Assembly: GCF_006345805.1 (NCBI RefSeq)
Contig: NC_042998.1
Span: 197,532,001 to 197,596,000 of the forward strand
DNA from: Octopus sinensis
Taxonomy: Eukaryota
DNA length: 64,000 nucleotides
Direction: 5' to 3'
Below the pieces are notes generated by a model, which was not told the origin of the DNA, did not search any database, and was given only the letters and a program-made list of their open reading frames with translations. Position numbers and translations under genes: made by a program. This document shows positions 5,075 through 62,066 of the stretch, one piece after another (the first letter of the stretch is position 1; each line of letters starts with the position of its first letter).

Positions 5075-5149
5075 TGGAGGAATGTATCTTTTTATTTCTC
5101 GATAAATCTCATCGTTCACCATTTCAAATGTTTTATTCTCAGTATCCAA
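5075..5149 (-). CDS. Exon J (75 nt, phase 0 to 0): [25 protein letters not shown]
   Basis: Acceptor ttctcccttccag|, donor CCA|gtaagt; AK terminal strand/helix. Confidence 0.9.
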
Positions 5150-5394: not shown

Positions 5395-5437
<43 letters not shown>

Positions 5438-5478: not shown

Positions 5479-6986
5479 CATTAATATTATTATTATCATT
5501 GAGTGAGAGAGCAGTTCATGCCATCAAAGTGACACTGGGCTAAAATATACGAAGCCCAATATACCCATCATGACTACCTGTCTGATAAAGGTACACCAGG
5601 CACATGCATCACAACCATATGTGCACGACATGGTGATCTCATATCAAGACAAACAGCACATGACCTTGCAGGTGGGGCCCAGTTAGAATTTTCTTCTGGT
5701 TGAGTAGCCCATCCCACTCAAAAGGTCTCTGAATAAGGTTTGTTTAAGGATGATGAATGAAACACCCATGTTTCCAGAGGTGAATTATTCAAATCCCAAA
5801 GAATTCCTCTCAACTAATGGCTACAATGCTCACCCCGACTACTTCTGCTCGTGATCAGAGATGCACATATCATCAGCCACATTTTTTGGCCATCTTGGAA
5901 ACATCTGAACCACTCGCACACTTGTGTGTGGCTCATACACTCCTCTCCATACACTTTCTGCAACCTTATGTAGGCCTCTGAGCAGGTATTGCCATGATAA
6001 CTTTCTCTGTCATGGTCAATGCAATGATCACACACTACACAACTTCCTTCCAAGCACTGCTGTAAACAGCAGAAGTGAGCGAGATCGTTAAAACTTAGCA
6101 TGCATGCACAGCAGAGTTCAAGGTCAATCTGTGCCAAACAGCTTTACACTGTGTGCTTTAGCTTCGTTACTATAGCAACAGTCCGGATACTTATTGATCA
6201 GATCCTGTATTTGTACTCATTTATATGCATTTATGTTGCTTTATATAAATTTATTGCTGTTTAATATATATAAAGTTTATTGATTCATGCCGGTGGCACA
6301 TAAAAAGCACCATCCGAACATGGCTGATTCCAGCGCTGCTTCGACTGGCTTCTGTGCTGGTGGCACGTAAAAAGCACCATCCAAGCGTGACTGATGCCAG
6401 CACCGCCTTGACTGGTTTCCGTGCCGGTGGCACGTTAAAAGCACCAACTGATCGTGGCCGCTGCCAGACTACCCTGGCACCTGTGCCAGTGGCACGTAAA
6501 AAGCACCCACTACACTCGCGGTGTGGTTGGCGTTAGGAAGGGCATCCAGCTGTAGAAACACTGCCAGATCAGACTGGAGCCTGGTGCAGCCTCCTGGTTT
6601 CCCAGACCCCGGTCGAACCGTCCAACCCATGCTAGTGCAGAAAACGGACGTTAAACGATGATGATGATGATTAGTATAGTTTAATATACATTTCTAACAT
6701 TTCATTTACATAAGGAGGTGCGCTGGCAGAATCGTTAGCATGCCAGGTAAAATACCTAGTGGCATTCTGTCCATACTCTCTTTACTCTTTTACTTGTTTC
6801 AGTCATTTGACTGCGGATATGCTGGAGCACCGCCTTTAGTCGAGCAAATCGACCCCGGGACTTATTCTTTGTAAGCCCAGTACTTATTCTATTGGTCTCA
6901 TTTTGCCGAACTGCTAAGTTACGGGGACGTAAACACACCAGCATCGGTTGTCAAGCAATGCTAAGGGGACAAACACAGACACACAA

Positions 6987-7047: not shown

Positions 7048-10000
7048 TACGACCGGCTTCTTTCAGTTTCCGTCTACCAAATCCACTCACAAGGCATTGG
7101 TCGGCCCGGGGCTATAGCAGAAGACACTTGCCCAAGATGCCGCGCAGTGGGACTGAACCTGGAACCATGTGGTTGGTTAGCAAGCTACTTACCACACAGC
7201 CACTCCTGTGCCATCTTTACATTCTGAGTTCAAATTCTGCTGGGGTTGACTTTGCCTTTCATTTTTTCCAGTGTCAATAAATAAGTACCAGTTGTGCACT
7301 GGGGGTTGATGTAATTGACTTATTCCTCCCCAGAATTGCTGGCCTTGTGCCAAAAGTTGAAATCAGTATTTGATTTACACATTTACTATTCGTTTTTATT
7401 GTTGAAGTTCATTTGTAATGTTTTGTACATGTGCTCAGGAGTGGCTGTGTGGTAAGTAGCTTGCCTACCAACCACATGGTTCCGGGTTCAGTCCCACTGC
7501 GTGGCACCTTGGGCAAGTGTCTTCTACTATAGCCTCGGGCCGACCAAAGCCTTGTGAGTGGATTTGGTAGACGGAAACTGAAAGAAGCCCGTCGTATATA
7601 TGTATATATGTGTATATATATGTGTGCGTGTTTGTGTGTCTGTGTTTGACAACCGATGCTGGTGTGTTTATGTCCCCGTCACTTAGCGGTTCGGCAAAAA
7701 GAGACCGAGAGAATAAGTACTGGGCTCACAAAGAATAAGTCCCGGGGTTGATTTGCTCGACTAAAGGCGGTGCTCCAGCATGGCCTTAGTCAAATGACTG
7801 AAACAATTAAAAGAGTAAAAGAGTAAAAGAGTGTCTCTACCTTAGAAATATTTTTAAAAAAATGATGGAACTTGAAGACAGAGCAATGAGAACAAAAATA
7901 AGGGCCCTACCACGACTAGCCTGGACATATCGTCATAATAATTAATGACAGGTAAGGTGTGTTTCTTAAAACAAGTGATCTCATTAGTCACAGCTAATAG
8001 ATTGTTCACTGAATATGAAGCCTTCGCATTTCGCTCCAGTAGAACACTTATAGCTTCCTTTTCAGGGCATCTTAAGTAGATCATTGTTGTAGGTAAACCA
8101 ATCTGAAATATAAAGTCAACATAAAGAGCTCATTGAAGAACTGGGTAACACATAAAATTATCAACCATCTCACAAACAATAACTCTGAGTACCTTTTCAA
8201 ACTCCACCTGTCTAACACCCGTGGACATATTTACAAAGTCAGAAAACAGCACAGCTCCTTCCATGACTTTCAGAAACATTTTTTCATGCTAAGAGTTGCT
8301 GAAGCATGGAACAAACTGCTGGCATCAGTTGTTAGTTGTCAGAGCACTGCATCCTTCAAAACTTCCATGCTTCCTGAGATTCGCCAACACTACACCTGAT
8401 TTTCTCCCCTCCATACACACGCTGAAGCATGGAACAAACTGCTGGCATCAGTTGTTAGTTGTCGGAGCACTGCATCCTTCAAAACTTCCATGCTTCCTGA
8501 GATTCGCCAACACTACACCTGATTTTCTCCCCTCCATACACACGCAAGCATGTATCTGACTCATACACTGTTCGCTTTCCAGACATTTCTACATTACTGC
8601 ATATGCTTTATACTCACTTTTTGACAAGTTGTGGTGCACCTGAGCACTGTATACAATAATTTCGTTATTATTATTATTATTATTATACAACTTCTTCCTC
8701 CCCAACTGTTTTACCCTTGTATCAATATGTCCCTACCATTTAGCCTTATGTCAATATATAAGGCTCCAGTTAGAACAGGTTCAGCATATTGTTGGGGCTC
8801 TTTATATAGGGTTAATGTATTGTACATGTGAACAGTATATGGGGACCTTTGAAATGGACCACATATTGTACACCATTAGTGAATAGACAGTATACCTATA
8901 AAATATAAAGATTAACATATTGCACATACTGTAATCTCTCTCTATATAAAGCTGAAGTTGTCTGTGTGTGTGTGGCAGGTTTGGTAGCCTTCAACTAACA
9001 CTATCTCCTCCGAGACCCTGCTGTGCAAGTTGACCAAAATTGAAAGTATGATAGAAGAAGGCTTGCTCTTCCTTCCATAGAACAAAAAATTCAAATTGGA
9101 CCATGTTAACACAAAAATTCTTTACATCAAAAAGGTGCTTTTTTTCTATGAAAATCCCTATTTTTTACGATTTTTTGTCGCCATTTTTTGGAGTATTTCA
9201 AACCAGAAAAATGTTCACTTAAAGAGAATAATAAGCTTCATAATACAAAAGTTTTACTTTTCAAAAATTCCAATTCTAAAGGGTCGAAACAAACCCGAGC
9301 AACACCGGGCGATACTGCTAATATTGATTTAAACTTACATTTTAACAATAAGGTAATATTGAGGGTGCTTTCTAGAACTGTACTGATACAGTTTAAAGTC
9401 TATAGGATTCAGTAAACAGACAGTAAATCCATTCACATTGCATTAATATAATGTGTACCCTTCAGAAATGACACAACACCCAATACATTTGCAAGAGTAG
9501 CAATAACAAACTTCATGCAATTCATCTCTTTGGAAATTGCTTGCTGCTGTTGCTGTTGAGCGAACGGTCTTCGTCCCAGAGCTTACAAGATAGGAAAAGT
9601 CCGAAACATGGTCCTTTGCTATTTGTAAGACCCGCAGAAGAGAAAGCAGGTCAACCCCGACACCGAGAGCATCAACGGATGGAAGAATGCGCATCCAGGC
9701 TCAGCAGTTGCGTAGGAAGTCGGGGACAAGAAACAGGAAGAAAGAGTGAGAGAAAGTTGGAGCGAAAGAGTACAACAGGGGTCGCCACCACCCCCTGCCG
9801 GAGCTTCGTGGAGCTTTAGGTGTTTTCGCTCAATAAACACACACAACGCCCGGTCTGGGAATTGAAACCGCGATCCTCCTACCGCGAGTCCGCTGTCTTA
9901 ACCACTGGGCCATTGCGCCTCCACTGCTGCTGATGGCATGTTTAATATGTGCATTCTTTTGAAAATCGTTTACCTTTGTATTCAATCTCTACATGCCTTT

Positions 10001-21800: not shown

Positions 21801-24800
21801 TATGATGGTGATAAAGATACACACTCACACAAACACATATACCAATATGACTGTCTGATTGATAAATTATTCATGAAACTTGAAGTATTGAGTACTTTTT
21901 CTTTTCTTTTTTTTTTCTTTTGTAAGTAACACAAGCAGGAGTGGCTATGTGGTAAGTAGCTTGCTAACCAGCCACATGGTTCCGGGTTCAGTCCCACTGC
22001 GTGGCATCTAGGGCAAGTGTCTTCTGCTATAGCCCCGGGCCGACCAATGCCTTGTGAGTGGATTTGGTAGACGGAAACTGAAAGAAGCCTGTCGTATATA
22101 TGTATATATATGTATGTATGTATATGTGTTTGTGTGTCTGTGTTTGTCCCCCTAGCATTGCTTGACAACCGATGCTGGTGTGTTTACATCCCCGTCACTT
22201 AGCGGTTCGGCAAAAAGAGACCGATAGAATAAGTACTGGGCTTACAAAAGAGAATAAGTCCCGGGGTCGATTTGCTTGACTAAAGGCGGTGCTCCAGCAT
22301 GGCCGCAGTCAAATGACTGAAACAAGTAAAAGAGTAAAAGAGCAACACACATTCATTACAGCTGCACACTCACATATTTATGGACACATTTTTGGCTTAG
22401 TGGATAGGACGTATGTTTCACAAGTTCAGGGTTCAGGGTTTGATTTCACATGGGTGAGTACTTTGTCCTCTATGTTCAGTTTTAGAACAATGGTTTTATG
22501 TCTGTTTATAATTAAGATCTAAACTGTCAATATAGGAGTGCAAAAGAGATAGTTGAATAACTGTAAACCTACTTTGGGGCCACCATGCATGTATGTTTGT
22601 ATGTATATATATATATATGTACAGATATATATATATATGTATTAAATGTATGTATATATATAGGCGCAGGAGTGGCTGTGTGTTAAGTAGCTTGCTTACC
22701 AACCACATGGTTCCGGGTTCAGTCCCACTGCGTGGCACCTTGGGTAAGTGTCTTCTACTATAGAAGACTTGTGAGTGGATTTGGCAGACGGAAACTGAAA
22801 GAAGCCCATCATATATATGTTAGTTAGTTAGTTAGTTAATTTGGCTCAAAAGCAAATAGCAAGGCCATGTAGGGGGACATGGAGTTAAGTACAGGGTGGT
22901 GTTCATGTAAAGAGTTCAGGCCACTTGAGGTCCAGGGAGGCTTTGAACAAAGCGGTCGTCGGCATCTTCACCATCTCGTCTGGCAGCTTGTTCCACGGAT
23001 CCGCAACCCGGACGGAGAAAGCTCCTCTCCTTCGATTGAGATGAAATCGTCGCAGGTAGAGCTTTTCGGAATGACCCCGCAGCCGACGCTCCCGAGCAGG
23101 AGTGAAGAACAGCTCTTTCGAGAGGTTACACTTTCCGCTTATGATGTTGTGGGCGAGAATGAGATCACCACGGCGGCGGCGTTTTTCAAGAGAATAAAGG
23201 TCGAGCGTCCTCAGCCTTTCTTCGTAGGACAAATTTTTGAGACCATGAACCATGCGGGTAGCCAGCCTCTGGACTCTTTCGAGGTGCTGTATGTCTTTGA
23301 GGAGATAAGGAGAAGAAGCTTGAATCCCCTACTCCAATATGGGTCTCACCAGCGTGACATAGAGTGGCAGGAATATGGCTGCTGTGAGCATTCCGAATGA
23401 CCGTCGAATCAAAAACATGAGTGTGTGTATGTTTGTGTGTCTGTGTTTGTCCCCCTAGCATTGCTTGACAACCGATGCTGGTGTGTTTACGTCCCCGTCA
23501 CTTAGCGGTTCGGCAAAAAGAGACCGATAGAATAAGTACTGGGCTTACAAAGAATAAGTTCTGGGGTCGAGTTGCTCGATTAAATGCGGTGCTCCAGCAT
23601 GGCCACAGTCAAACGACTGAAACAAGTAAAAGAGTAAAAGAGTAAAGAGTATATGCATCAAAATGCATCAAATTTGACTACTGGCATCCGTGCTAGCTGG
23701 GTGCAAAGAGCACCATATGAGTGTGATTGTTGACAGAGCAGCGAACCGGCTTCCGTGCCAGTGGCACATAAAAAGGCACCATTCGAGTGTGATCGTTACC
23801 AGTGTCGCCTTACTGGCACTTGTGCCCATGCTAGTAGGGTGCCAAGAGCATCATCCAAGCGTGATCGTTGCCAGAGCAGCCAACTGGCTCCGTGCTGGTG
23901 GCACGTAGAAGGGTACCACTCGAGTGTGATCATTACCAGCGTCGCCTTACTGGCACCTGTGCCAGTGGCATGTGTAAAAAGATTCGAGTGAGGTCACTGC
24001 CTGTACCGCGTGACTGGCCCCGTGCCGGTGGCACGTAAAAAGCACCCACTACACTCTCAGAGTGGTTGGCGTTAGGAAGGGCATCCAGCTGTAGAAACTC
24101 TGCCAGATCAACACTGGAGCTTGGTGTGGCTGTCTAGTTCACCATCCCTCAGTCAAAATCATCCAGTCCATGCTAGCATGGAAAGGGGATGTTAAACGAT
24201 GATGATGATGATGATGATGATGTATGAGTTTTGTTTCTATGATTCCATTTAAGTTCTATATTGGGAATAAATACCAATGATTTGGGGAATATAATTTGCA
24301 ATGGACTGATCTTCTATCCTGGGACAGTGCTATCTCTTCATTGAATTCTTGCCAGGAAACCAGAGTAGAAACATCATCAATGTGTCCAGGTGAGGTCTCT
24401 AAATCGTATTTAAGTTAATCATTTTAAAGCAAGATTAGCTTACCATATTATTGAATTGGTCAAGTTGAGCAAAGTTCTTGGGATAACCAAGCACTAAAAT
24501 TAATTGCCTCTGTTCCACAGCATCTTCAATTTTACTATTGATTAACTCATTCACATCAAACTGCAATAAAAACATGTAAGAAGCTGTGAAAGTCAATATA
24601 GAATTAAATTATAGTATAGCATTTATTTCTTTATTACCCACTAGGGGCTAAAAATAGAGGGGAAAAACAAGGAGAGACAAAGGGATCAAGTTGATTACAT
24701 CGACCCCCAGTGCCTAACTGGTACTTAATTTATCGACCCCGAAAGGATAAAAGGCAAAGTCGACCTCGGTGGAATTTGAACTCAATGTAACGGCAGACGA

Positions 24801-26047
24801 AATACCTATTTCTTTACTACCCACAAGGGGCTAAACACAGAGGGGAAAAACAAGGACAGACAAAGGGATCAAGTTGATTACATCGACCCCCTGTGCCTAA
24901 CTGGTACTTAATTTATCGACCCCGAAAGGATAAAAGGCAAAGTCGACCTCGGCGGAATTTGAACTCAGTACGTAACGGCAGACGAAATACCTATTTCTTT
25001 ACTACCCACAAGGGGCTAAACACAGAGGGGACAAACAAGGACAGACAAAGGGATCAAGTTGATTACATCGACCCCCAGTGCCTAACTGGTACTTAATTTA
25101 TCGACCCCGAAAGGATAAAAGGCAAAGTCAACCTCGGTGGAATTTGAACTCAGTACGTAACGGCAGACAAAATACCTATTCCTTTACTACCCACAAGGGG
25201 CTAAACACAGAGGGGACAAACAAGGACAGACAAAGGGATCAAGTTGATTACATCGATTCCCAGTGCCTAACTGGTACTTAATTTATCGACCCCGAAAGGA
25301 TAAAAGGCAAAGTCGACCTCGGCGGAATTTGAACTCAGAACGTAACGGCAGACAAAATACCTATTTCTTTACTACCCACAAGGGGCTAAACACAGATGGG
25401 AAAAACAAGGACAGACAAAAGGATCAAGTTGATTACATCGACCCCCCAGTGCTTAACTGGTACTTAATTTATCGACCCCGAAAGGATAAAAGGCAAAGTC
25501 GACCTCGGCGGAATTTGAACTCAGAATGTAACGGCAGACGAAATACCTATTTCTTTACTACCCACAAGGGGCTAAGCACAGAGGGGACAAACAAGGACAG
25601 ACAAAGGGATCAAGTTGATTACATCGACCCCCCAGTGCTTAACTGGTACTTAATTTATCGACCCTGAAAGGATAAAAGGCAAAGTCGACCTTGGCGGAAT
25701 TTGAACTCAGAATGAAAAAACAGACGACATACTGCTAAGCATTTCGGCCGGTGTGCTAGCATTAAAATATATACATGTGTGCGTATGTAATAAATGTATT
25801 GGTGCAAGCATAATTGTGTGTATAAGAAGTTCGCTTTCCAGACATGTGGTTTTAGGTTTATTCTCCTTGTATGATTCCTTGGGCAAGTGTGTTCTGCTAA
25901 TCGACCTGAGCTGACGAGAATACATTTTTGTTGGGTTCTGTCTCACTGCAGAGTACCTTGGGCAAATGTCTTCTACTATAGCTTTGGGCTGATCAAAGCA
26001 ATAGAAATGAATTTGGTACACAGAAACTGAAAGAAGCCCATTGTATA

Positions 26048-30481: not shown

Positions 30482-31010
30482 TACGACAGGCTTCTTTCAG
30501 TTTCCATCTACCAAATCCACTCACATGGCATTGGTCGGCCTGGGGCTATAGCAGAAGACACTTGCCCAAGATGCCACGCAGTGAGACTGAACACAGAACC
30601 ATGTGGTTGGTAAGCAAGCTACTTACCACACAGCCACTCCTGCGCCTGTAGTAAATTCCATTGTCTCAACCACAGTCGAACAATGATGATGATGACGATG
30701 ATTGAAGTGTGGGTGATGGAGGATGCAGGTAAAGTCAAACTGCTGACGAGAATTTTAATGAAGCTCACCTGTTGTATAACTTCGTCATTTCTAATCAGGG
30801 CTGCAGCAGTTTTCCACTGGCTACAGTCAGGATCATCGGGATCATTGATGCTGTTGCATACCATCTGACCAATAGAAATGCAATCCAGGCCAGGATACTG
30901 CGATGCCAGTGTTGTAGCATGCTGCACTTTTTGACAGCCTGGAATACCTTAAATATAAGAGACAAAGGAAACAAGGAATATTTTCTTTCACACTGTGTGC
31001 ATCCGTATAC

Positions 31011-33090: not shown

Positions 33091-34003
33091 GCAAACAAAT
33101 GTGGTAACATGTAACAATATTGACCGAGGTTACCATGGTCTTTTCTGTAGGCTTTTCTTTCAATGGATAAACCTTATATCTGCTTCCCCCTTTACACTTT
33201 ACATCATGGTTTTTCTGTAATACACGATCCCTATTGATCGTTTTTTCTTTTTCTTTTTCCCTTTTTCCCCCTTTTTTTTCTTTCTTTTTTTTTCCCCTTT
33301 TACGATCCTTTTTGATTGAAAACCTACCCAACTTTTTTTTCTCTCTCTCCCCAAAAAGAAAAGCTCTACTTTGTAATCTATCCCGTCTGTGTTCAGCCCT
33401 GTGTGGCTAATAAAGAAACATATCTATGTATTTGTGTATATATATATGCACGTATATGTGTGTATGTGTGTGTGTTTGTAAATATATACATTCACACATA
33501 CACACACATGGATTGTTATGTTTGAAATACTGAACAGTTTTAAAGGGCAAACGTAGGACAAAATTAACCCATTGAAACTCACCTCTCAATATTGAGGGCC
33601 CATGAGGAAATATGTACTTAGTACAGCAAATTAATGTGAACACCCATGGCTTAAAAAATACTCCTGTTTCTTACTACATACAACACTGGGGCACCAACAG
33701 TCTGTTACCTTACCTGATGTGGCAGTGAAGGCATTGCTCCAGCATGGCCTTAGATATGATGCCTGAAGTAAACTAAAGAACCTGTATGAAGTGGCATCTT
33801 TATATTCTACGAGAAGAAGAAGATTAAGATTGATGTGTTACCTGTTAGAAGAACCAGTGGGCATTTTGGGAAATGTGGATAAAAGGAGAGCTGCGGAGGA
33901 TATGCTGTCTCTCTCGGTGGAGTCTCCAAGTCACTGTAAACTGACATGCTCCGTAACTGCTCCTGAATTTCTAATTGGACAAATAGAAAATGTACAATTA
34001 AAC

Positions 34004-34036: not shown

Positions 34037-35990
34037 TTAACGTCCGTTTTCCGCGCTAGCACGGGTTGGACGGTGCTGGTGCGTTTACGTCCCCGTAACT
34101 TAGCGGTTCGGCAAAAAGAGACCGATAGAATAAGTACTGGGCTTACACAAAGAATAAGTCCCGGGGTCGATTTGCTCGACTAAAGGCGGTGCTCCAGCAT
34201 GGCCGCAGTCAAATGACTGAAACGAGTAATAGAGTAAAGAGAGTATGGACAGAATGCCACTAGGTATTTTACCTGGCATGCTAACGATTCTGCCAGCGCA
34301 CCTCCTTATGTAAATGAAATGTTAGAAATGTATATTAAACTATACTAATCATCATCATCATCGTTTAACGTCCGTTTTCCGCGCTAGCACGGGTTGGACG
34401 GTTCAACCGGGGTCTGGGAAGCCAGGAGGCTGCACCAGGCTCCAGTCTGGTCTGGCAGTGTTTCTACAGCTGGGTGCCTTCCTAACGCCAACCACTCCGC
34501 GAGTGTAGTGGGTTCTTTTTAGGTGCCAGGGGAGTCTGGCATCGTCCACGATCGGTTGGTGCTTTTAACGTGCCACTGGTATGGAAGCCAGTCAAGGCGG
34601 CGCTGGCATCAGCCACGTTCAGATGGTGCTTTTTACGTGCCACCGGCACAGAAGCCAGTCAAGGCGGTGCTGGCATCAGCCACGTTCGGATGGTGCTTTT
34701 TACGTGCCACCGGCACAGGTATCACAACTGCTGTTTCCATTGATATTTATTTCGATGTTCATGTACTTGACTCAATAGGTCTCCTCAAGCACAGCGGGAT
34801 GTTCTAGAATCCAAGGTACTTTGATGCGGGACTGGTGCAGGAAGCAGCCCAGGTCTTTGCAGTCACAGCATATCTCCAGAGATCTCGGTCCTTCGTCATT
34901 GCCTCTGTGAGGCCCAACGCTCTGAGGTCATGCTTGACTACCTCATCTCATGTCTTCCTGGGTCTACCTCTTACCCCTGATATCTTCAACTGTTTGGGAG
35001 CGGCACTTCTTCAGACATCTCTCCTCATCCATCCGCAGTGTATAACAATATGGATAGTCTCAAGGTCTCTCTCAAAGACTTCTCCATCGGAACAGAGACC
35101 TGGGAGACACTTGCTGCCAACCGCTCATCCTGGCGCAGCGCAATCACCGTGGGAGCAGGGACAGCCGAGGAGGGACGGATTCGGTCAGCGGAGCAGAAAC
35201 GTCAGATGCGTAAAGACAGAGCCGCCTGCACCAGTAGCACGGCCCCTACCCACTTCTGCCCCACCTGTGGGAGGGGCTTCCTTGCCCAGATTGGACTCAC
35301 CAGCCACCTCCGGTCTCATGGCACCAGTTCCATCAGATGATGTCAGTTGGTCATCTTCGAACCGAAGGACGAACATTATTATAACAATATGGCATTTAGA
35401 GTGACAAATTATTATATAATGTGAACATATTAAGTGTGATGGAGTTACAGAGTTTGCCATGGGATAATATTGAATTAGCTACCTGTTTGTGGTTTTCCAT
35501 CGAGAGCATTCTTTATAAGGTTCCTGATTTCCATAATGACATCTTCTTGTCTGGTATCTTTATGAATCTGACAAGGAAGACAAAAAGCTATAAAGACAAC
35601 TGTGGTGACGGTCATAACATGATATATATTTCTTTACTAACCACAAGGGGCTAAACATAGAGGGGACAAACAAGGACAGACAAAGGGATCAAGTCGATTA
35701 CATCGACCCCAGTGCGAAACTGGTACTTTATTTATCGACCCCGAAAGGATGAAAGACAAAGTCAACTTGGCGGAATTCGAACTCAGAACGTAACGACAGA
35801 CGAAATACCGCTAAGCATTTCGCCCTGCGCGCTAACGTTTCTGCCAGCTCGCCGCCTTGGGTCATAACATGATATATATGGTCATAATATGATATATATG
35901 AAGGATTCTTCTGTTGAAGATGATGTATGAGTGTCCAGCAAGAAGACAGATAAAAAAAAGATCCATCCAAATTGACAATCAACAACACAC

Positions 35991-46253: not shown

Positions 46254-46941
46254 ATTTGAAAATCTGTTGGAAGGCAAAATCTTACTTCAATGAATTTCTT
46301 GGCTTTCTTGTAATGTGCAATAACTGGATTCATTCGTTCTTTGTAAGTTTGGACATGGAGAGCAACCAATCCTGGAATGTATGCACTCGTATTAACCTTT
46401 GCTTCTAACTTTGTAAGACATTTCTCAATGCTTGTTGATTCTTCAGTATGTATGTAAACCACAACCATAATCTGGTCAGGTCGTATCTAAATGATGAGAA
46501 AAGTGAGAAAGATAATTATTCAATTGTCTCTGCTTGGGGTTGAGTTTTCAAACCAACTAATTTAGGGCAGGTGTCTACTTTATATATACAAATATCTGAG
46601 ATGAGTCATTGGTAGTGTTACACGGAGTATTTATATTGCTGTTAATAGCTTTATATTATATTATTTTTAATGACCATTGGGCCGTTGCCAGCTTCGTCTA
46701 GTACCCGTGCCGGTTGCACGTAATAAGCACCATCCGATCGTGGCCGTTTGCCAGCCTCATCTAGCACCTGTGCCGGTGGCACATAAAAAGCACCCACTAC
46801 ACTCATGGAGTGGTTGGCGTTAGGAAGGGCATCCAGCTGTAGAAACTCTGCCAGATCTGAATGGCCTGGTGCAACCTTTGGGCTTCCCAGACCCCAGTCG
46901 AACCATCCAACCCATGCTAGCATGGAAAGCGGACGTTAAAC

Positions 46942-55900: not shown

Positions 55901-58900
55901 AGACCCCAAAATAGTTGATTAGCTCCAGGTTGACCTGAATGTGCAAACTGATGATCAAAGACCCCCAGCTAAGACCATCCCATCTTTTATATTTTATAGA
56001 CCCCAAAATAGTTGATTAGCTCCAGGTTGACCTGAATGTGCAAACTGATGATCAAAGACCCCCAGCTAAGACCATCCCATCTTTTATATTTTATAGACCC
56101 CAAAATAGTTGATTAGCTCCAGGTTGACCTGAATGAGCAAACTGATGATCAAAGACCCCCAGCTAAGACCATCCCATCTTTTATATTTTATAGACCCCAA
56201 AATAGTTGATTAGCTCCAGGTTGACCTGAATGTGCAAACTGATGATCAAAGACCCTCAGCTAAGACCATCCCATCTTTTATATTTTATAGACCCCAAAAT
56301 AGTTGATTAGCTCCAGGTTGACCTGAATGTGCAAACTGATGATCAAAGACCCTCAGCTAAGACCATCCCATCTTTTATATTTTATAGACCCCAAAATAGT
56401 TGATTAGCTCCAGGTTGACCTGAATGAGCAAACTGATGATCAAAGACCCTCAGCTAAGACCATCCCATCTTTTATATTTTATAGACCCCAAAATAGTTGA
56501 TTAGCTCCAGGTTGACCTGAATGTGCAAACTGATGATCAAAGACCCCCAGCTAAGACCATCCCATCTTTTATATTTTATAGACCCCAAAATAGTTGATTA
56601 GCTCCAGGTTGACCTGAATGTGCAAACTGATGATCAAAGACCCTCAGCTAAGACCATCCCATCTTTTTCTTGGAAAATGTGTATCTACCATTACTTTATC
56701 TAACGTGTTCCTTCCTTTTCTGGATAGATGGTTTGATTAAATGGAGATTTAGCAGCTACATCTAGCTTGTTGAGTGACAAGAGTTTTCTTTGTTGGATTG
56801 TCATATTTACGTATTTTCAAGAAAGGTCAGATATATGGAGGGAAGCCGTGGTGAGAAAGACTGAAAACCAGATACAATGTTAGTCCACATTGTTTAAAAT
56901 CCAGAAATGTGATATAAAGTCTAAGTGCTGTGTTATTTCACACTGTTTAAAATATAGAAATCTTTATATATAAAAAAGTTGTGTGTCTGTCTCCTACGAT
57001 TTAGATTCCTAACTACTCCCACATTTTGCGGTGCAGTGTAACCAAAACCGGGTATCTTATAGTCGTGATTCATATCGAGCCCTTCTGGGTATTAGCGCGC
57101 ATCTACTATGAGTCTACGATTTAAAAAAAATTTACCATCATTTTTTTCCATTTTTAATGCATTTTTTCGCTATTATATAAGGGAAGTAACTCTCTAAAAA
57201 TGTCTACGATGAGTCAACGATTTAAAAAAAATTTACCATAATTTTTTTCCATTTTTAATGCATTTTTTTTGCTATTTTTTGGCTATAACTCTCTAAAAAT
57301 GCTTATATAGTTATTTCCCTTACAAACCCGAGCAACGCCGGGCGATACTGCTAGTGTGATATAAATGAAAATCTCAATAGAATGGTTGAAAATATCAAAT
57401 GGATTATGTGTTTAGGATTACTTAATCAAGTGAGGAAAGCTAGTACTCATGATTCTTTTCAGGGCCTCTGGTGATAAAAAAGCAAGGAATTATCCTCATA
57501 CCATAGACCTGGCCCAGATAATTGCAACAAAGTGGATTCTGGAATTCTGCTTGAAAGACCAAGAATAGTATTAAATGGACAATGAAATTAGTGGATATCA
57601 GTTTGTTTACTGATGATACACGTTCATAAATTTAATAGTTAAGAGATCCTTAATCTCATTGTGTCACCAGAGCTCTCTTTTGCCTTCATGTAACATGTAT
57701 TTAGGGGTGAGTTATTTAATGAGACCCATTCCTCTCTCAGCTTTACCTTACACATAGGATTTGAACTTAACACTGCAAGTTAACAAAATGTCATTCCTTA
57801 GTTACACAGAGTTGATGTTACAGGTGATGTAATATCAATTTACAGCCAAGTAGGTTTCATTAATATTTATTTCTTTATTGCCCATAAGGGGCTAAACACA
57901 GAGGGGACAAACAAGGACAGACAAAGGGATTAAGTCGATTACATCGACCCCAGTGCGTAACTGGTACTTATTTAATCGACCCCGAAAGGATGAAAGGCAA
58001 AGTCGACCTCGATGGAATTTGAACTCAGAACGTAACGGCAGACAAAATACAGCTACGCATTTCGCCCAGCATGCTAACGTTTCTGCCAGCTCGCCGCCTT
58101 AATTAATTTTGGTGAATTATTCCTGTTGTGTAGTGTTGATTTATTGCTAGATAGACAGGCTATTTTCTTAACAGGCTCAGTGTAGTAACAATGGTAAGAT
58201 ATGAATTAGCAGGCTAATTGACCACACAGTTGGTTCCCTGTTGTTGTCAATGGGGATGTAACAGAAACAACAGAGTGCTGGACCAAATACTTGTGGTATT
58301 AAGTCGTATTCCTTTGCATTTTGAGTTCGACTGTAACTGGGACCAATTTTGTCTTGTAGGTTTCACTTGACATTTGTAGAGGGCTCCCTTTTACTCTTTT
58401 ACTTGTTTCAGTCATTTGACTGTGGCCATGCTGGAGCACTGCCTTTAGTTGAGCAAATCGACCCCAGAACTTATTCTTTGTAAGCCTAGTACTTATTCTA
58501 TCGGTCTCTTTTGCCGAACCGCTAAGTTACGGGGATGTAAACACACCAGCATCGGTTATCAAGCGATGTTGGGGGACAAACACAGACACAAATACACACA
58601 CATATATATACAACAGGTTCTTTTCACTTTCCGTCTACCAAATCCACTCACAAGGCTTTGGTCGGCCTGAGGCGATAGTAGAAGACACTTGCCCAAGGTG
58701 CCACGCAGTGGGACTGAACCCGGAACCATGTGGTTGGTAAGCAAGCTTCTTACCACAAAGCCACTCCTGCGCTTCCGGCTATTAGTTAAAACATTTTTTT
58801 TTAATCTTGGAAGAAAGACAGTCTTTGTGATGTAATCTTTTGTATGTCAAGGATGTTAGTTATCAGAAAAAAATTTAGTGATGGTGAGGCCTTGCATTTG

Positions 58901-60413: not shown

Positions 60414-61836
60414 TACGACGGGCTTCTTTCAGTTTCCGTCTACCAAATCCACTCACAAGGCTTTGGTTGGCCCGAGGCTATAGTAGAAGATACTTGCCCA
60501 AGGTGCCACGCAGTGGGACTGAACCCGGAACCATGTGGTTGGTAATCAAGCTACTTACCACACAGCCACTCCTGCGCCTGTATGTTGTTTTTCAACAAAA
60601 AAAAATTTCTAAAAATATTCTGGAAACAATCTACTCATGTAATTTATGCACCCTCTAAAAGTTTATTTTTGTTTTTGCAGAATAAGTGCGCAAATTACAA
60701 GGGACTTTAGCAACAGTTCTTTTGTATTCCTGCATTCTTTCAATACTTACATCCATAGGAGTTTCTTTGAGTGTTTCCATGGTGACAAACTTCAGGATAG
60801 TGTATGTAAATCTTGATACAATAACCCAGGTCGGGTAGCCATTTCTGAGTTCTTGTGCAAACTTTATCTTCTCCGATTCCGGTGGACCTTTGAAAATGGT
60901 TAAAAACACATCAAACTTAGAAAACAGGGGTAGGAAATTGACAAAAATAAACATCAAAGATCAAATTTCAAACCATCATCATTGTTATCATTGTCATTGT
61001 CGTCATCATTACCTCCTCCCCCTCCTCCTTCTCTCCACCGCCTTCCCTCTGCATCCGACTGTTAAGTTTTATGGAAAATAGTAAGGTGCTTTTATAAGGG
61101 CCTGATACACAGCTTACTACCTCATGAAAGCTGGAACTGTTGACAAATACAGAATATCATTTTACTGATGTGTATAGATGTGTATAGAACTGTATTATCC
61201 TTTTCTGATTTTGCATATCATCATCATCATCATCATCATCATCATAACCGTTTAACGTCCGCTTTCCATGCTAGCATGGGTTAGATGGTTCAACTGGGGC
61301 CTGGGAAGCCAGAAGGCTGCACCAGGCTCCCGTCTGATCTGGCAATGTTTCTACAGCTGGATGCCCTTCCTAATGCCAACCACTCCGTGAGTGTAATGGG
61401 TGCTTTTTACGTGCCACTGGCACAGTGACCAGATGAGGCTGGCAAACGGCAAGGATGTTTCATTGGCTCACTCTAATGGGTGTAAGGTGTGGGTATAGCA
61501 GTAGCAATATCTCAGATGTTGGTGGTTTTCTAGTGTTTGGAGCTCTTGTGAATTCAATAAGGTTAGTAACTGTTCAGAGGAGGAATAATTCTTGATCCTC
61601 ACCAGAAGGCATAACATTTGAGACTCAGTTTTATCAGTGTTATCAAAGGTATTTAAAACTAGTCTGTATCAATGAGCAAATGAAGGAGGATCTTCTCTGT
61701 GGTCACTCTCACCTATGTCAATTAGGGAAGACCATGTTAGTTTATGCAGTTCTTCTGTACTCTATTAAGAAAGCAAGATGCTCTCAGCTGTGAGGCTTTT
61801 GATCACAGATATACTTGATTAGGGTTGACTTGGGGT

Positions 61837-61890
<54 letters not shown>

Positions 61891-62066
61891 GCAGCAGCAG
61901 CAACAACAACAACAACAATGACAAACAAATCAACTTCCTGCAGTGTGTAGTAAATCGTTTTACTTACCTAATATAAGTACAACTGGCTTCTTAGTGAGAG
62001 GAATATTTTCTTCAGGGGATTCAAGAGAAGGAACTCCATCTGGAATATTCCCTTCTGGCATCAGAC
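5075..62066 (-). CDS. Partial multi-exon gene (10 exons in window) encoding two tandem degenerate adenylate-kinase-like domains; continues beyond both ends
   Basis: Hand-spliced exons give an uninterrupted 1319-nt frame with phases 1-1-0-0-0-1-1-0-0-0-0 and GT..AG introns. The translation follows AK1/AK5 motif order twice: VVLILGPPESEK...FIVVDYP...QVAAFE...MNPVIAHY...[10 protein letters not shown] and LVLLTGIPGCQK...ILVLGYPK...QLDQF...TLPVINYY...[11 protein letters not shown]. The orthologue is not identified. Confidence 0.85.
5368..5499. repeat. (ATT)n microsatellite
   Basis: Direct. Confidence 0.95.
5506..5878 (-). mobile_element. Non-coding (AAT)n-tailed interspersed element, 5'-truncated copy
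   Basis: Reverse-complement match to 41206-41690; abuts the (ATT)n at 5368-5499. Confidence 0.7.
5879..6209 (-). mobile_element. Mariner (Tc1/mariner) 5' fragment: TIR plus HTH of transposase
   Basis: TA|CAGGATCTGATCAATAAGTATCCGGACT TIR; [35 protein letters not shown]. Confidence 0.75.
6290..6670 (+). mobile_element. RTE 3'-UTR-derived repeat
   Basis: Family match. Confidence 0.85.
6714..7370 (+). mobile_element. Old family-D-like SINE split by the CORE-type SINE at 6775-7211
   Basis: Head at 6714-6774 continues at 7212 (TTTACATTCTGAGTTCAAATTC...). Confidence 0.6.
6775..7211 (-). mobile_element. CORE-type SINE, full length
   Basis: Family match. Confidence 0.9.
7433..7832 (+). mobile_element. 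CORE-type SINE, full length
   Basis: Family match; inverted relative to 6775-7211. Confidence 0.9.
7911..8102 (-). CDS. Exon I (192 nt, phase 0 to 0): [64 protein letters not shown]
   Basis: Acceptor gactttatatttcag|, donor GTG|gtaggg; IGxP..hhYh.cp and TlPVi.yY are AK motifs. Confidence 0.9.
8190..8685 (+). mobile_element. CR1-type LINE 3' end with (ATT)n tail and an internal 123-bp tandem duplication
   Basis: TRGHIYKV...[13 protein letters not shown]; 8298-8420 is repeated at 8421-8543; sister copy at 36885-37240. Confidence 0.8.
8935..9321 (+). mobile_element. Non-autonomous Helitron, different internal sequence
   Basis: A|TCTCTCTCTATATAAA...CCCGAGCAACACCGGGCGATACTGCTAA|T (CTAG mutated to CTAA). 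Confidence 0.7.
9550..9924 (-). mobile_element. tRNA-derived SINE with the family A head and a third 3' tail (variant C)
   Basis: Same head on the minus strand; unrelated tail ending in CAA/CAG repeats; possible TSD TGCTGCTG. Confidence 0.8.
10072..10497. mobile_element. MITE with 28-bp TIRs
   Basis: TAGGATCTTTTCGGATTGACCGGCAGTT vs right-end reverse complement TAGGATCTTTTCGGTTTGAACGGCAGTT (2 mismatches); flanked by GAAT/GAAT; internal (CCCTAA)3 at 10371-10388. Confidence 0.8.
10525..10895 (+). mobile_element. RTE 3'-UTR-derived repeat
   Basis: Family match. Confidence 0.85.
11509..11895 (+). mobile_element. tRNA-derived SINE, family A, full length
   Basis: 12-bp TSD ACCTGTAATTAA at 11497-11508 and 11896-11907. 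Confidence 0.9.
12101..15460. repeat. 72-bp minisatellite, ~46 copies, built from GAT/AAT/GGT/AGT triplets
   Basis: Period measured as AGTAGTAATG at 12121 and 12193; one + frame reads ([24 protein letters not shown])n. Confidence 0.95.
15461..16100. repeat. Degenerate (GAT/GGT)n and (CAT)n(GAT)n(CAT)n microsatellites flanking the array
   Basis: Visible directly in the sequence. Confidence 0.85.
16520..16905 (+). mobile_element. CR1-type LINE 3' end, (AACT)n tail
   Basis: [30 protein letters not shown]; matches 22818-23415 and 59200-59805. Confidence 0.85.
17016..17427 (-). mobile_element. CORE-type SINE
   Basis: Family match. Confidence 0.9.
17560..18260 (+). mobile_element. Highly decayed L1/Tx1-like endonuclease remnant
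   Basis: Purine-rich decayed coding-like tract with faint motifs (VVANDL, RFLDQL, TYQSET..RDL.RV); many stops. Confidence 0.3.
18303..18475 (+). mobile_element. CORE-type SINE, left half
   Basis: Family match up to the internal (TA)n. Confidence 0.85.
18625..18800. repeat. Long inverted repeat: 72-bp arms, 4 mismatches, 32-nt loop
   Basis: Left arm 18625-18696 and right arm 18729-18800, compared base by base. Confidence 0.95.
18880..20315 (+). mobile_element. Decayed RTE LINE RT region
   Basis: [46 protein letters not shown]; many stops and frameshifts. Confidence 0.75.
20325..20839 (+). mobile_element. Ty3/Gypsy LTR-retrotransposon RT fragment
   Basis: [11 protein letters not shown]...VEEELD...[30 protein letters not shown]...[24 protein letters not shown]. 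Confidence 0.9.
20865..21135 (+). mobile_element. RTE 3'-UTR-derived repeat
   Basis: Family match. Confidence 0.85.
21450..21748 (-). mobile_element. RTE 3'-UTR-derived repeat
   Basis: Family match. Confidence 0.85.
21935..22342 (+). mobile_element. CORE-type SINE, full length
   Basis: Family match. Confidence 0.9.
22663..23650 (+). mobile_element. CORE-type SINE split by the CR1 insertion (halves 22663-22817 and 23420-23650)
   Basis: The two halves are collinear around the CR1. Confidence 0.85.
22818..23415 (-). mobile_element. CR1-type LINE RT C-terminus and 3' UTR inserted into a CORE-type SINE
   Basis: [31 protein letters not shown]...[13 protein letters not shown]; tail AACTAACTAACT. 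Confidence 0.9.
23665..24222 (+). mobile_element. RTE 3'-UTR-derived repeat, many modules
   Basis: Family match. Confidence 0.85.
24444..24560 (-). CDS. Exon H (117 nt, phase 0 to 0): [39 protein letters not shown]
   Basis: Acceptor catgtttttattgcag|, donor ATG|gtaagc; LGYPK corresponds to DGYPR. Confidence 0.9.
24624..25756 (-). mobile_element. Head-to-tail hexamer of SINE family D (185-bp units)
   Basis: Unit starts at 24806, 24991, 25176, 25361 and 25547; only the last unit carries the head; possible TSD TAGCATT at 24617-24623 and 25757-25763. Confidence 0.9.
25805..26160 (+). mobile_element. Older, diverged CORE-type SINE
   Basis: CCTTGGGCAAGTGTGTTCTGC core (twice), GAAACTGAAAGAAGCCC, (TG)n. 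Confidence 0.6.
26985..27422. repeat. ~440-bp imperfect (TG)n microsatellite
   Basis: Direct. Confidence 0.95.
27702..28012 (+). mobile_element. tRNA-derived SINE with the family A head and a different 3' tail (variant B)
   Basis: Same first ~180 nt as family A; 12-bp TSD ATATCTTACGTA at 27690-27701 and 28013-28024. Confidence 0.85.
28199..28598 (+). mobile_element. CORE-type SINE, full length
   Basis: Family match. Confidence 0.9.
28850..29550 (+). mobile_element. Two RTE 3'-UTR-derived repeats (28850-29259 with long (GAT)n; 29330-29550)
   Basis: Family match. Confidence 0.8.
30001..30646 (-). mobile_element. CORE-type SINE, split by a family D SINE and itself inserted in an RTE 3' end
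   Basis: The RTE 3' end at 29880-30000 resumes at 30648 (GTAAATTCCATTGTCTCAACC), matching 4995-5040. Confidence 0.85.
30233..30449 (+). mobile_element. SINE family D monomer inserted in the (TA)n of a CORE-type SINE
   Basis: GGCGAGCTGGCAGAAATGTTAGC...GGGTAGTAAAGAAATA between (TA)n runs. Confidence 0.85.
30769..30947 (-). CDS. Exon G (179 nt, phase 1 to 0): (G)[59 protein letters not shown]
   Basis: Acceptor tttcctttgtctcttatatttaag|GT, donor CAG|gtgagc; degenerate P-loop followed by an hiS.Gdll-like motif (CISIGQMV). Confidence 0.9.
31005..31482. repeat. (TA)n/(TACA)n compound microsatellites
   Basis: Direct. Confidence 0.9.
31483..31690 (-). mobile_element. Probable Penelope-like terminal fragment between two (TA)n runs
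   Basis: Contains a minimal hammerhead of the type associated with Penelope termini; family assignment inferred. Confidence 0.5.
31571..31605 (-). ncRNA. Minimal type I hammerhead ribozyme motif
   Basis: GUUU-CUGACGA-AGAGCUCCGCUU-GAAAC-GUU-AAAC: intact core, palindromic ACGU stem III, 4-bp stem I. Confidence 0.6.
33842..33970 (-). CDS. Exon F (129 nt, phase 1 to 1): (E)[42 protein letters not shown](G), inter-domain linker plus beta1 of domain 2
   Basis: Acceptor ttttctatttgtccaattag|, donor ACAG|gtaaca; phase-compatible with exons E and G. Confidence 0.85.
34345..35035 (-). mobile_element. RTE LINE 3' portion (RT end plus modular 3' UTR)
   Basis: [34 protein letters not shown] upstream of the UTR modules. 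Confidence 0.85.
35035..35345 (+). mobile_element. RTE (BovB-like) LINE C-terminal fragment with C2H2-type finger
   Basis: [27 protein letters not shown]...[21 protein letters not shown]. Confidence 0.8.
35483..35567 (-). CDS. Exon E (85 nt, phase 0 to 1): [28 protein letters not shown]
   Basis: Acceptor tttttgtcttccttgtcag|, donor ACAG|gtagct; AK terminal beta5/helix (iD...EeV..eI). Confidence 0.85.
35630..35859 (-). mobile_element. tRNA-derived SINE family D monomer
   Basis: Head GGCGGCGAGCTGGCAGAAACGTTAGC...GAGTTCGAATTCC; 20-bp TSD GGTCATAACATGATATATAT at 35610-35629 and 35860-35879. Confidence 0.9.
35990..36240 (-). mobile_element. RTE 3'-UTR-derived repeat
   Basis: Family match. Confidence 0.85.
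36290..37560 (-). mobile_element. Decayed RTE (BovB-like) LINE, split by a CR1 at 36885-37240
   Basis: [11 protein letters not shown]...KQGCV (37330-37520); LNNFHVRC...[11 protein letters not shown] (36680-36860); [15 protein letters not shown] (~36370). Confidence 0.7.
36885..37240 (+). mobile_element. CR1-type LINE 3' end (same family as 8190-8685), inserted into an RTE remnant
   Basis: Direct sequence match to 8190-8685 without the duplication. Confidence 0.8.
37675..38186 (+). mobile_element. CORE-type SINE with an RTE-tail fragment inside its (TA)n
   Basis: GTCCAAGCCATGCTAGCATGGAAAACGGATGCTAAACGATGATGAT at ~37912-37960. Confidence 0.85.
38514..39345 (+). mobile_element. CORE-type SINE split by a Helitron
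   Basis: Halves are collinear around 38709-39088. Confidence 0.85.
38709..39088 (+). mobile_element. Non-autonomous Helitron inserted into the (TA)n of a CORE-type SINE
   Basis: A|TCTCTATATAAA...CCTGAGCAACGCCGGGCGATACTGCTAG|T. Confidence 0.8.
39729..40268. repeat. Compound (AAT)n/(GAT)n/(ACT)n microsatellite
   Basis: Direct. Confidence 0.95.
40483..40597 (+). mobile_element. R4/Dong-like RLE retrotransposon extreme C-terminus plus 3' UTR, followed by (AAT)n
   Basis: [18 protein letters not shown] resembles the LQK....T.RI.RK.L terminus of this clade. Confidence 0.55.
40801..41160 (+). mobile_element. R4/Dong-like RT fragment (YMDD) interrupted by (AAT)n
   Basis: [39 protein letters not shown], resuming as CAATTTGGATT (QFG) after the repeat. 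Confidence 0.75.
41206..41690 (+). mobile_element. Non-coding ~490-bp element flanked by (AAT)n on both sides
   Basis: Second copy at 5506-5878; ends ...CTCTCTCACTC(AAT)n; no long ORF. Confidence 0.7.
42033..42560 (-). mobile_element. Head-to-tail trimer of SINE family D
   Basis: Junctions at 42150/1 and 42324/5; a single 17-bp TSD AAGTTTGAGAGCTATTC at 42016-42032 and 42561-42577. Confidence 0.9.
43030..43455. repeat. ~425-bp C/T-only tract
   Basis: Almost exclusively pyrimidines on the + strand. Confidence 0.95.
43545..43910 (+). mobile_element. Older diverged RTE 3'-UTR-type repeat
   Basis: GGTTGGCATTTGGAAGGGCATCCAACTG and CCATGCCAGCATGGAAAGCAGATGTTAAACGATGATG. Confidence 0.65.
43918..44174. 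repeat. (CA)n with recurrent CTA interruptions
   Basis: Direct. Confidence 0.9.
44490..45670 (+). mobile_element. RTE LINE 3' portion: RT C-terminus plus long modular 3' UTR and (GAT)n tail
   Basis: [14 protein letters not shown]...[11 protein letters not shown]...[17 protein letters not shown] runs directly into the GTGCCGGTGGCAC-module UTR. Confidence 0.85.
45945..46253 (+). mobile_element. RTE 3'-UTR-derived repeat
   Basis: Family match. Confidence 0.85.
46286..46486 (-). CDS. Exon D (201 nt, phase 0 to 0): [67 protein letters not shown]
   Basis: Acceptor cttttctcatcatttag|, donor GAA|gtaaga; matches the AK LID/C-terminal region (tY...PVi.yY.k). Confidence 0.9.
46675..46980 (+). mobile_element. 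RTE 3'-UTR-derived repeat
   Basis: Family match. Confidence 0.85.
47345..47770 (+). mobile_element. RTE 3'-UTR-derived repeat, ~4 modules
   Basis: Family match. Confidence 0.85.
47893..48263 (-). mobile_element. CORE-type SINE with a ~55-bp internal deletion
   Basis: GCACCGCC|AGTACTTATTC junction. Confidence 0.85.
48456..48560 (-). CDS. Exon C (105 nt, phase 0 to 0): [35 protein letters not shown]
   Basis: Acceptor tttgcttctaattttgcag|, donor TGC|gtgagt; matches the AK segment GFLIDGYPR..Q...FE. Confidence 0.9.
48650..48945 (-). mobile_element. Two old family-D-like SINE remnants directly preceding the 97-bp satellite
   Basis: Diverged TTGACTGGTACTTT...GCTGACCTTGGCAGGATTTGATCTCAGA and ATCGACCCCCAG..CTGGTACTTTATTTTATAGACCCC. 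Confidence 0.5.
48947..56666. repeat. 97-bp tandem satellite, ~80 copies, in intron B-C
   Basis: Unit GACCCCAAAATAGTTGATTAGCTCCAGGTTGACCTGAATG(T/A)GCAAACTGATGATCAAAGACCC(C/T)CAGCTAAGACCATCCCATCTTTTATATTTTATA; starts at 48947 and 49044. Confidence 0.97.
56961..57354 (+). mobile_element. Non-autonomous Helitron
   Basis: A|TC 5' end, subterminal hairpin CCCGAGCAACGCCGGG, CTAG|T 3' end; internal ~80-bp duplication. Confidence 0.85.
57868..58100 (-). mobile_element. SINE family D monomer
   Basis: Full-length match to 35630-35859. Confidence 0.85.
58390..58772 (-). mobile_element. CORE-type SINE
   Basis: Family match. Confidence 0.9.
59200..59805 (+). mobile_element. CR1-type LINE RT C-terminus and 3' UTR
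   Basis: [13 protein letters not shown]...[31 protein letters not shown]. Confidence 0.9.
60145..60579 (-). mobile_element. CORE-type SINE
   Basis: Family match. Confidence 0.9.
60751..60887 (-). CDS. Exon B (137 nt, phase 1 to 0): (G)[45 protein letters not shown]
   Basis: Acceptor ttttaaccattttcaaag|GT, donor GAT|gtaagt; degenerate P-loop; [11 protein letters not shown] resembles IMEKGELVPLD of AK1. Confidence 0.8.
61218..61450 (-). mobile_element. RTE 3'-UTR-derived repeat
   Basis: Family match. Confidence 0.85.
61845..61918. repeat. (AAC)n(CAG)n microsatellite
   Basis: Direct. Confidence 0.9.
61968..62066 (-). CDS. Exon A (99 nt, phase 1 to 1): (G)[32 protein letters not shown](G), linker plus beta1 of domain 1
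   Basis: Acceptor tttttgtttctttactccctctgtaag|GT, donor TTAG|gtaagt; joins exon B in frame to give VVLILG-PPESEK. Confidence 0.85.

Follow-up and report, generated by a model that had tools for sequence, protein, structure and literature searches.

An adenylate kinase isoenzyme 5-like gene of Octopus sinensis whose two adenylate-kinase folds lack most catalytic residues and whose reading frame is preserved

Can a gene lose catalytic residues from both of its enzyme folds and still be kept as a protein-coding gene? The question is raised by a stretch of Octopus sinensis DNA, hereafter the window, which comprises 64,000 nucleotides and is letter-identical to CM016860.1:197,532,001-197,596,000 of assembly GCA_006345805.1. 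An earlier reading of these letters (the original prediction) had proposed that the window carries a hidden ten-exon gene on the minus strand, encoding two tandem adenylate kinase (AK) folds, both apparently catalytically dead, and acting as a pseudo-kinase scaffold or a nucleotide-sensing module. We consider it reasonably probable that this is an annotated AK5-like gene, corresponding to the N-terminal half of a split ancestral gene, in which both AK folds (D1 and D2, from the N-terminus) are dead and the reading frame is preserved for a non-catalytic docking or scaffold role.

The gene itself is not hidden, because RefSeq already contains a model of it and O. bimaculoides has an annotated orthologue; its product is the 538-amino-acid protein 'adenylate kinase isoenzyme 5-like [Octopus sinensis]' (P0001). 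All six motifs quoted in the original prediction were recovered from the minus strand at the positions anticipated, within open segments that are bordered by polypyrimidine/AG acceptors and GT(A/G)AG donors, and a homology search with these segments concatenated retrieved three Octopus proteins, P0001 being the best match. In a splice-aware exact reconstruction, the exons that we call E1 to E10 sum to 1319 nt, or 439 codons, without any stop and with AG/GT sites throughout, and they translate into exactly residues 88-526 of P0001 (100% identity). The proposed frame of about 439 amino acids was thus exact for all ten exons, but incomplete, as it lacked a terminal exon (E11) and two N-terminal ones. 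Indeed, E1-E10 are coding exons 3-12 in a gene with 13 coding exons; residues 88-538 could be rebuilt from 11 minus-strand exons, every splice site being canonical AG/GT, and the two N-terminal coding exons (amino acids 1-20 and 21-87) lie outside the window, 4-8 kb past position 64000. E10 has a GT donor at its 3' end, in phase 0, and is, therefore, an internal exon. Tblastn comparisons of nine intact family members with the window and its 10-kb flanks detected neither extra AK-like exons outside the known ones nor a missed exon for a segment of the nucleoside monophosphate (NMP)-binding region that is deleted from D1.

The exons found in the window are given below, with catalytic positions in human AK1 numbering, counted along the AK1 sequence.

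61968..62066, minus strand: E1, 99 nt; linker and beta-strand 1 of D1 (...KKPVVLILG); of the same size in O. bimaculoides and with an equivalent in Argonauta
60751..60887, minus strand: E2, 137 nt; degenerate P-loop of D1, GPPESEK (60888-60859), and an NMP-binding region that is short by 16 residues, including the R44 helix
48456..48560, minus strand: E3, 105 nt; core strand of D1 and DYPT (48503-48489) replacing G[YF]PR, with R97 changed to T
46286..46486, minus strand: E4, 201 nt; LID remnant of D1, KLEAKVNTS (46411-46385), with R132 changed to K, R138 to N, D140/D141 to S/A and R149 to H
35483..35567, minus strand: E5, 85 nt; C-terminal helix of D1
33842..33970, minus strand: E6, 129 nt; linker between the two domains (of low confidence and probably disordered) and beta-strand 1 of D2 (KCPLVLLTG)
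30769..30947, minus strand: E7, 179 nt; degenerate P-loop of D2 (30948-30919) and NMP-binding region, with GQMVC replacing GDLLR and R44 changed to C
24444..24560, minus strand: E8, 117 nt; core strand of D2 and GYPK (24491-24477), with R97 changed to K
7911..8102, minus strand: E9, 192 nt; LID remnant of D2 (8036-8001), with R132 kept, R138 changed to Y, D140/D141 to V/N and R149 to E
5075..5149, minus strand: E10, 75 nt; C-terminal helix of D2, ending in phase 0 at a GT donor
1715..1753, minus strand: E11, 36 nt plus the stop codon TAA; the final 12 residues, KLHGVEDETSQK

D1 and D2 are both real AK folds, of the AK1 type with a short LID. Pfam ADK matches the protein in two stretches (E = 1.5e-16), and a purpose-built hidden Markov model (HMM) of the AK domain recognises D1 (4.6e-12) as well as D2 (2.4e-25). 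In searches of solved structures with the sequence only, matches were limited to D2, and included UMP kinase (1.5e-8), domain 2 of human AK5 (5.6e-8) and several AK1 entries. A full AlphaFold2 model, built from 31 family sequences, has confident cores in both domains, with block values of the predicted local distance difference test (pLDDT) of about 75-93; confidence is low in the linkers and in residues 146-160, which form the shrunken NMP-binding region of D1, and pLDDT falls below 50 at residues 309-328, in the linker encoded by E6. When modelled separately, D1 reached a pLDDT of 83 and a predicted template-modelling score of 0.81, and all its top Foldseek matches in the PDB were AKs (AK5, AK1) or UMP-CMP kinase, with E about 1e-9 and template-modelling (TM) scores of 0.62-0.68. 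D2, for its part, aligns with AK1 crystal structures with a TM score of 0.85. Among the Foldseek matches there are also axonemal chains with several AK domains, AK8 in the doublet of bovine sperm and the large AK chain in the structure of mouse radial spoke 3. The Pfam ADK search and the AlphaFold model, both suggested as checks in the original prediction, thus agree with Foldseek on two tandem AK folds.

Catalytic residues were scored by MAFFT and HMM alignment to intact family domains, at positions K21, R44, R97, R132, R138 and R149, together with the Asp pair D140/D141 of the LID. Neither P-loop fits the consensus GxPGxGKGT (GPPESEKIK in D1, GIPGCQKVQ in D2), the Lys alone being kept, and two Gly of the D1 P-loop are replaced by Glu. 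At the six positions, D1 has K, a deletion, T, K, N and H, and D2 has K, C, K, R, Y and E, so that one and two of the six residues are kept, respectively; the LID Asp pair reads S/A in D1 and V/N in D2. The deletion in D1, of 16 residues, removes the whole AMP-binding (R44) helix. Both domains therefore lack most AK catalytic residues, as had been proposed; the additional claim that nothing but the P-loop Lys survives holds for D1, but not for D2, which also retains R132, within LLER. In Argonauta hians, the D1 P-loop is GSLESNM, and the P-loop Lys is consequently gone there, with D2 showing K, T, K, Q, Y and G at the six positions. The Lys codon of GYPK in D2 is AAG, which adenosine-to-inosine (A-to-I) editing would recode to Arg according to the genetic code, and such recoding is a well-known feature of cephalopods; editing at this codon could restore at most one of the missing residues. 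Judging from these residues, D1 and D2 are almost certainly inactive as adenylate kinases.

An exhaustive HMMER search identified only two close relatives, in O. bimaculoides (80% identity) and in Argonauta hians (43% identity, with the same degenerate motifs), followed by collinear matches of 20-28% identity to long multi-AK proteins. The best non-octopod matches, from scallop, snails, nemerteans, starfish and flukes, are all named 'adenylate kinase isoenzyme 5-like', which together with their collinearity bears out the relation to AK5 and other multi-domain AKs that had been suggested. Searching from an intact bivalve member, we found the family in bivalves, gastropods, a chiton, annelids, a brachiopod, nemerteans, a bryozoan, echinoderms and hemichordates, and also in amphioxus, cnidarians, a sponge, chytrid fungi and vertebrates, the last with the true AK5; molluscs other than octopods have both long and short members. 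The best 120 matches to the intact bivalve member included no cephalopod, and accordingly no second cephalopod protein with the arrangement docking helix-D1-D2. A profile search with alignment A1 retrieved only the three Octopus proteins, a result in which low-complexity nemertean tails may have swamped the word index.

Some of the gene models in these relatives need caution. The O. vulgaris model (P0003, 493 amino acids, 'hypothetical predicted protein') appears to be mis-built: E6 is swapped for a stretch matching window positions 33807-33712, which resembles other interspersed intronic copies, E9 is missing, and the end of the protein is non-homologous sequence. Likewise, open equivalents of E1 and E2 occur at positions 4638-4727 and 6435-6587 of the A. 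hians locus (L003), upstream of the annotated start of GAB1604798.1, indicating that the Argonauta model is truncated at its N-terminus.

All family members share an N-terminal helix pair (...AKxYLxxxxIPxLFExLxxGLxxxxPxDPxxYL...), which in O. sinensis is encoded outside the window, and residues 3-45 of P0001 contain 14 positions that are invariant across molluscan and vertebrate AK5 members (alignment A4). A profile of the pair matches EFCAB10 (4.9e-5), FAP385 (0.012), the N-terminus of AK8 (0.014) and the docking domain of PKA RI-alpha (0.054) and, more weakly, DPY-30 and NME5 (about 0.2), and the Pfam Dpy-30 model matches five of ten family members. On these similarities, the helix pair appears to be of the RIIa/DPY-30 docking type, which is common in axonemal proteins. 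Its identity between octopus and other phyla is 30-39%, vs 17-25% for the AK domains. Moreover, intact D1 and D2 domains of bivalves, chiton and nemerteans are 50-69% identical to each other (65% for D1 of bivalve and chiton), and octopus D1 and D2 are only 20-33% identical to any intact domain; the two octopod domains would then have evolved very fast. Intron positions coincide in D1, D2 and D3 of the family (for D3, near 51990 of L006, the downstream locus described below); for instance, a phase-1 intron interrupts the Gly codon that precedes xPG in each P-loop, a pattern compatible with an ancient duplication of the domains in tandem, introns included.

Is there, then, an active counterpart elsewhere? 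No active domain exists within the window gene, but the next gene downstream on the same strand (XP_029655246.1, P0084; 396 amino acids, CM016860.1:197,437,644-197,506,427) encodes two AK domains, each with all six catalytic residues. This gene lies about 27 kb downstream of the window gene and about 25.6 kb beyond window position 1, and its domains correspond, in the same order and with 64% identity, to D3 and D4 of a scallop four-domain protein. Argonauta hians has the same tandem pair: 4.8 kb downstream of its degenerate gene, and on the same strand, lies a gene containing two strong ADK domains. In scallop, chiton, brachiopod and others, the ancestral AK5-like protein is a single polypeptide comprising the docking helix, D1, D2, D3 and D4. 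The window gene thus corresponds, in octopods, to the N-terminal half of this four-domain protein (docking helix, D1, D2), and the downstream gene is a slowly evolving D3-D4 gene that is catalytically intact to judge by its sequence. Being next to a D3-D4 orthologue, the dead gene is half of a split locus rather than an isolated oddity.

Several points weigh against the reading of the window gene as a maintained docking or scaffold protein. The ratio of nonsynonymous to synonymous substitution rates (dN/dS) between O. sinensis and O. bimaculoides is 0.54 with the Nei-Gojobori method (Fisher P = 0.0018) and 0.78 with the transition-aware LPB93 method, for which the bootstrap 95% interval is 0.54-1.15; in addition, dN (0.09-0.10) hardly differs from the substitution divergence of the introns (0.085 over 15 kb), so that amino-acid constraint must be weak. 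A dN/dS value of 1.36 in the N-terminal 65 codons rests on 2.5 synonymous changes and carries no information. We accordingly rejected the Nei-Gojobori estimate as a sign of clear purifying selection, because the LPB93 interval includes 1 and because of the level of intron divergence. Furthermore, no orthologue from squid, cuttlefish or Nautilus was recovered in any search. These dN/dS and divergence values, together with the extreme divergence of D1 and D2 from all relatives, a C-terminal tail without conservation and the disappearance of the D1 P-loop Lys in Argonauta, would suit a relic in slow decay, its function having been lost once catalysis moved to the D3-D4 gene. However, we regard such a relic as very unlikely, because the integrity of the frame goes far beyond neutral expectation. 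Given that the substitution tests are weak, we relied on stops and indels: against O. bimaculoides, we found no stop where 4.4 are expected with 136 neutral substitutions (P(no stop) = 0.01), and no indel either, although the density seen in introns, 8.6 per kb, would predict 11.3 over these 1319 nt (P(none) = 1e-5). The lengths of the ten exons are identical in both Octopus species, and 20 of 20 splice sites are conserved between them. The equivalents of E1-E5 and E7-E10 are still open in Argonauta at an identity of only 39-48%, and the former LID regions of Octopus and Argonauta have new motifs in common, NIPxLVAL and YS(V/I)xNLLxxTNxIxC; equivalents of E6 and of the N-terminal docking exons were not found in the 42-kb Argonauta locus, and may be too diverged, further upstream or lost. 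The tail encoded by E11 does differ between the Octopus species, being KLHGVEDETSQK in O. sinensis vs SEYS in O. bimaculoides (L004, about 67660-67675), each followed by a stop and preceded by the same acceptor, and the extreme C-terminus is therefore unconstrained. The original prediction held that frame, splice sites and fold are maintained, and the stop-free exons, canonical sites and confident domain cores sustain it; likewise, the comparison with O. bimaculoides, without stops, frameshifts or broken splice sites, argues against a pseudogene, though dN/dS is high (0.54-0.78). The pattern fits a protein that needs to be synthesised and folded, with a surface that is free to change, and is unlike that of a pseudogene.

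The preferred reading, a dead but maintained N-terminal half, must also be weighed against readings in which the two halves still act together or the dead half still handles nucleotides. Another point against it is that the window gene might be the 5' half of a longer unit, some mRNAs splicing E10 to exon 2 of the downstream gene and so rebuilding a four-domain protein with two dead and two live domains. The order and strand of both genes match the ancestral single protein, other molluscs have long as well as short family members, and the peptide that follows E10 differs among O. sinensis, O. bimaculoides and Argonauta. Besides, the coding sequence of the downstream gene opens with the tiny exon ATGCC(A/T)|GTAAG (ATGCCA|GTAAGT in O. 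sinensis), and since both E10 and this exon end in phase 0, a read-through splice would stay in frame. Phase compatibility has, nevertheless, a one-in-three chance of arising alone, every model (O. sinensis, O. bimaculoides, O. vulgaris and A. hians) calls two genes, the E11 acceptor is identical in both Octopus species, and the two-codon start exon is kept between Octopus and Argonauta, which suggests that the downstream gene has its own start. A fusion isoform is thus possible, yet not as the main product, and we judge this reading unlikely. We think somewhat less still of the idea that gene fission produced an enzyme/pseudoenzyme pair, in which the anchored dead half would be an adaptor that recruits or regulates the anchorless live half, or other partners (subfunctionalisation); if true, catalysis and localisation would reside on separate polypeptides. 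As to nucleotides, one or both domains could still bind them or perform an altered phosphotransfer, which would make the protein a sensor of nucleotides or else a kinase whose residues are unusual. The P-loop Lys is present in both Octopus domains and R132 in D2, the Pro of G-Y-P-x and the next Gln are invariant, and A-to-I editing of the GYPK Lys codon would yield Arg. Conversely, D1 has two P-loop Glu, no AMP-binding helix and no Lys in Argonauta, D2 lacks R44, R97, R138, R149 and both LID Asp, and editing could bring back one residue at most; altogether, we find this reading improbable. The nucleotide-sensing module of the original prediction is consequently doubtful, above all for D1, where the acidic P-loop GPPESEK, the deleted AMP-binding helix and the loss of the Lys in Argonauta make nucleotide sensing unlikely.

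The octopod locus thus represents the ancestral docking-D1-D2-D3-D4 gene as two gene models, a fast dead half and a slow live half. D1 and D2 have lost the residues that hold and transfer phosphate and D1, besides, its AMP-binding helix. From the preservation of fold, exon structure and reading frame, we propose that the protein is made and used. The N-terminal helix pair would anchor it as a docking or scaffold subunit, and the dead AK folds would act as structural or protein-binding modules, perhaps within the axoneme or some other anchoring site of the AKAP-like kind. On the sequence evidence, such a docking or scaffold role without catalysis is the most likely one. It may be ciliary or axonemal, as the original prediction considered plausible, or one of anchoring; support for this is indirect and comes from a similarity of the helix pair to axonemal proteins, the weakness of which counts against it. 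A second indirect hint is that the family occurs in flagellated chytrids, sponges and cnidarians.

Should the protein be produced and prove inactive, the locus would be a clean natural case of a metabolic enzyme turned pseudoenzyme in both domains, with its fold, exon structure and anchoring module kept and with the ancestral catalytic half surviving next door as a gene of its own. It would also be a tractable system for roles of the AK fold beyond catalysis, such as struts of the type seen in radial spoke 3, and for the partitioning of localisation and activity by gene fission. Its interest is moderate and mostly for specialists, and it opens no long-standing question.

The octopus gene is not alone in having degenerate AK domains. 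Using the purpose-built HMM, we retrieved 736 domain matches in 271 family proteins, and scored the 632 near-full-length domains among them: 423 keep six of the six catalytic residues, 102 keep five, and 71 keep three or fewer. Single dead domains were found in clams (D1, KKRKKK), pulmonate snails, Nucella, sea urchin (third domain), Nematostella, amphioxus, Limulus, insects and crustaceans. For example, proteins from Ischnura elegans (XP_046398135.1), pulmonate snails, Ruditapes and Limulus share family and architecture with the octopus protein and have at least one AK domain with three or fewer of the six residues, and in Trichinella pseudospiralis KRZ22853.1 both domains are degenerate, as in octopus. 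However, most of these proteins from other phyla contain at least one intact domain in the same polypeptide, and their substitutions differ from those of octopus and arose independently. Octopods are, therefore, an extreme case of a recurrent trend, distinguished by the split locus and by the loss in every domain of the polypeptide; as degenerate AK domains are common across phyla, the octopus case is less singular than the original prediction implied. In nematodes, arthropods, flatworms and snails, dead AK domains have arisen repeatedly and independently, yet these AK5-like proteins all go by the name 'adenylate kinase', so that annotation overstates enzymatic capacity. We found no publication that describes AK5-like proteins as pseudoenzymes, nor any on octopus adenylate kinase isoenzyme 5.

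Among better known systems, the closest are the AK5-like proteins themselves. That of Mizuhopecten yessoensis (XP_021354678.1) has, like the octopus protein, an N-terminal helix pair followed by tandem AK1-type domains with a short LID, in collinear order, and AK5-like proteins also share with it the conservation of intron positions between domains. In contrast, most invertebrate members keep all six residues in each domain, whereas octopus D1 keeps one and D2 two, D1 bears the 16-residue deletion, and D3-D4 form a separate gene. AK4, which keeps most catalytic residues, resembles the octopus proposal as an AK fold that works without catalysis, but it is a single-domain, long-LID, mitochondrial protein from a different subfamily. 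According to the account of Liu et al. 2009 given in PMC10056885, AK4 is enzymatically inactive and acts via binding to the ADP/ATP translocase. Human AK5 has two active domains, as Solaroli et al. 2009 are cited in PMC11626602, and AK5 and AK8 are each described with two active AK domains (PMC10056885). Mammalian AK5 is, in addition, reported to be mainly a cytosolic brain protein (PMC10056885), which likewise counts against a ciliary or anchoring role for the octopus protein. AK8 is the best Foldseek match to the whole octopus model (9fqr_G8, bovine sperm doublet microtubule, E = 9e-13), and both have a helical N-terminus, with a weak N-terminal profile match (E = 0.014), followed by two AK folds; AK8 is axonemal and, unlike the octopus protein, is reported to have two complete active domains (PMC10056885), and identity between them is only about 15%. 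Finally, AK domains act as structural struts in the head of radial spoke 3, as seen by cryo-electron microscopy (bioRxiv 10.1101/2025.05.19.654877).

The introns of the gene contain several repeats. A 97-bp satellite in about 80 copies (97% matches) occupies 7.7 kb at 48938-56667, and makes up most of the 12-kb intron between E2 and E3. The intron between E8 and E9 contains a 72-bp minisatellite in about 47 copies (12101-15457), ATG/GAT-rich and with a GC skew of 0.74, which coincides with long spurious open reading frames on both strands at about 12.0-16.1 kb. Pfam searches gave nothing meaningful in the long intronic open reading frames scanned, and Rfam gave no match in the window. An interspersed repeat, with a unit of about 67 bp and the core GGCACGTAAAAAGCACCATCCGAAC, is probably a SINE-like (short interspersed) element whose copies frequently stand in short tandem arrays. 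It has 11 intronic copies, with none expected by chance, at the following sites:

585, 6295, 6362, 10563, 21716, 34550-34708, 45952, 46715 and 47456: interspersed repeat of about 67 bp

A related repeat of about 175-185 bp forms arrays at 24624-25712 (5.9 copies) and 42051-42510 (2.6 copies), one of which lies directly upstream of E8 in the orientation of the gene. Outside the window, in both O. sinensis (L002) and O. bimaculoides (L004), a legumain-like gene (Peptidase_C13, 354 amino acids) is placed head-to-head with the AK5-like gene, less than 400 bp from its start codon.

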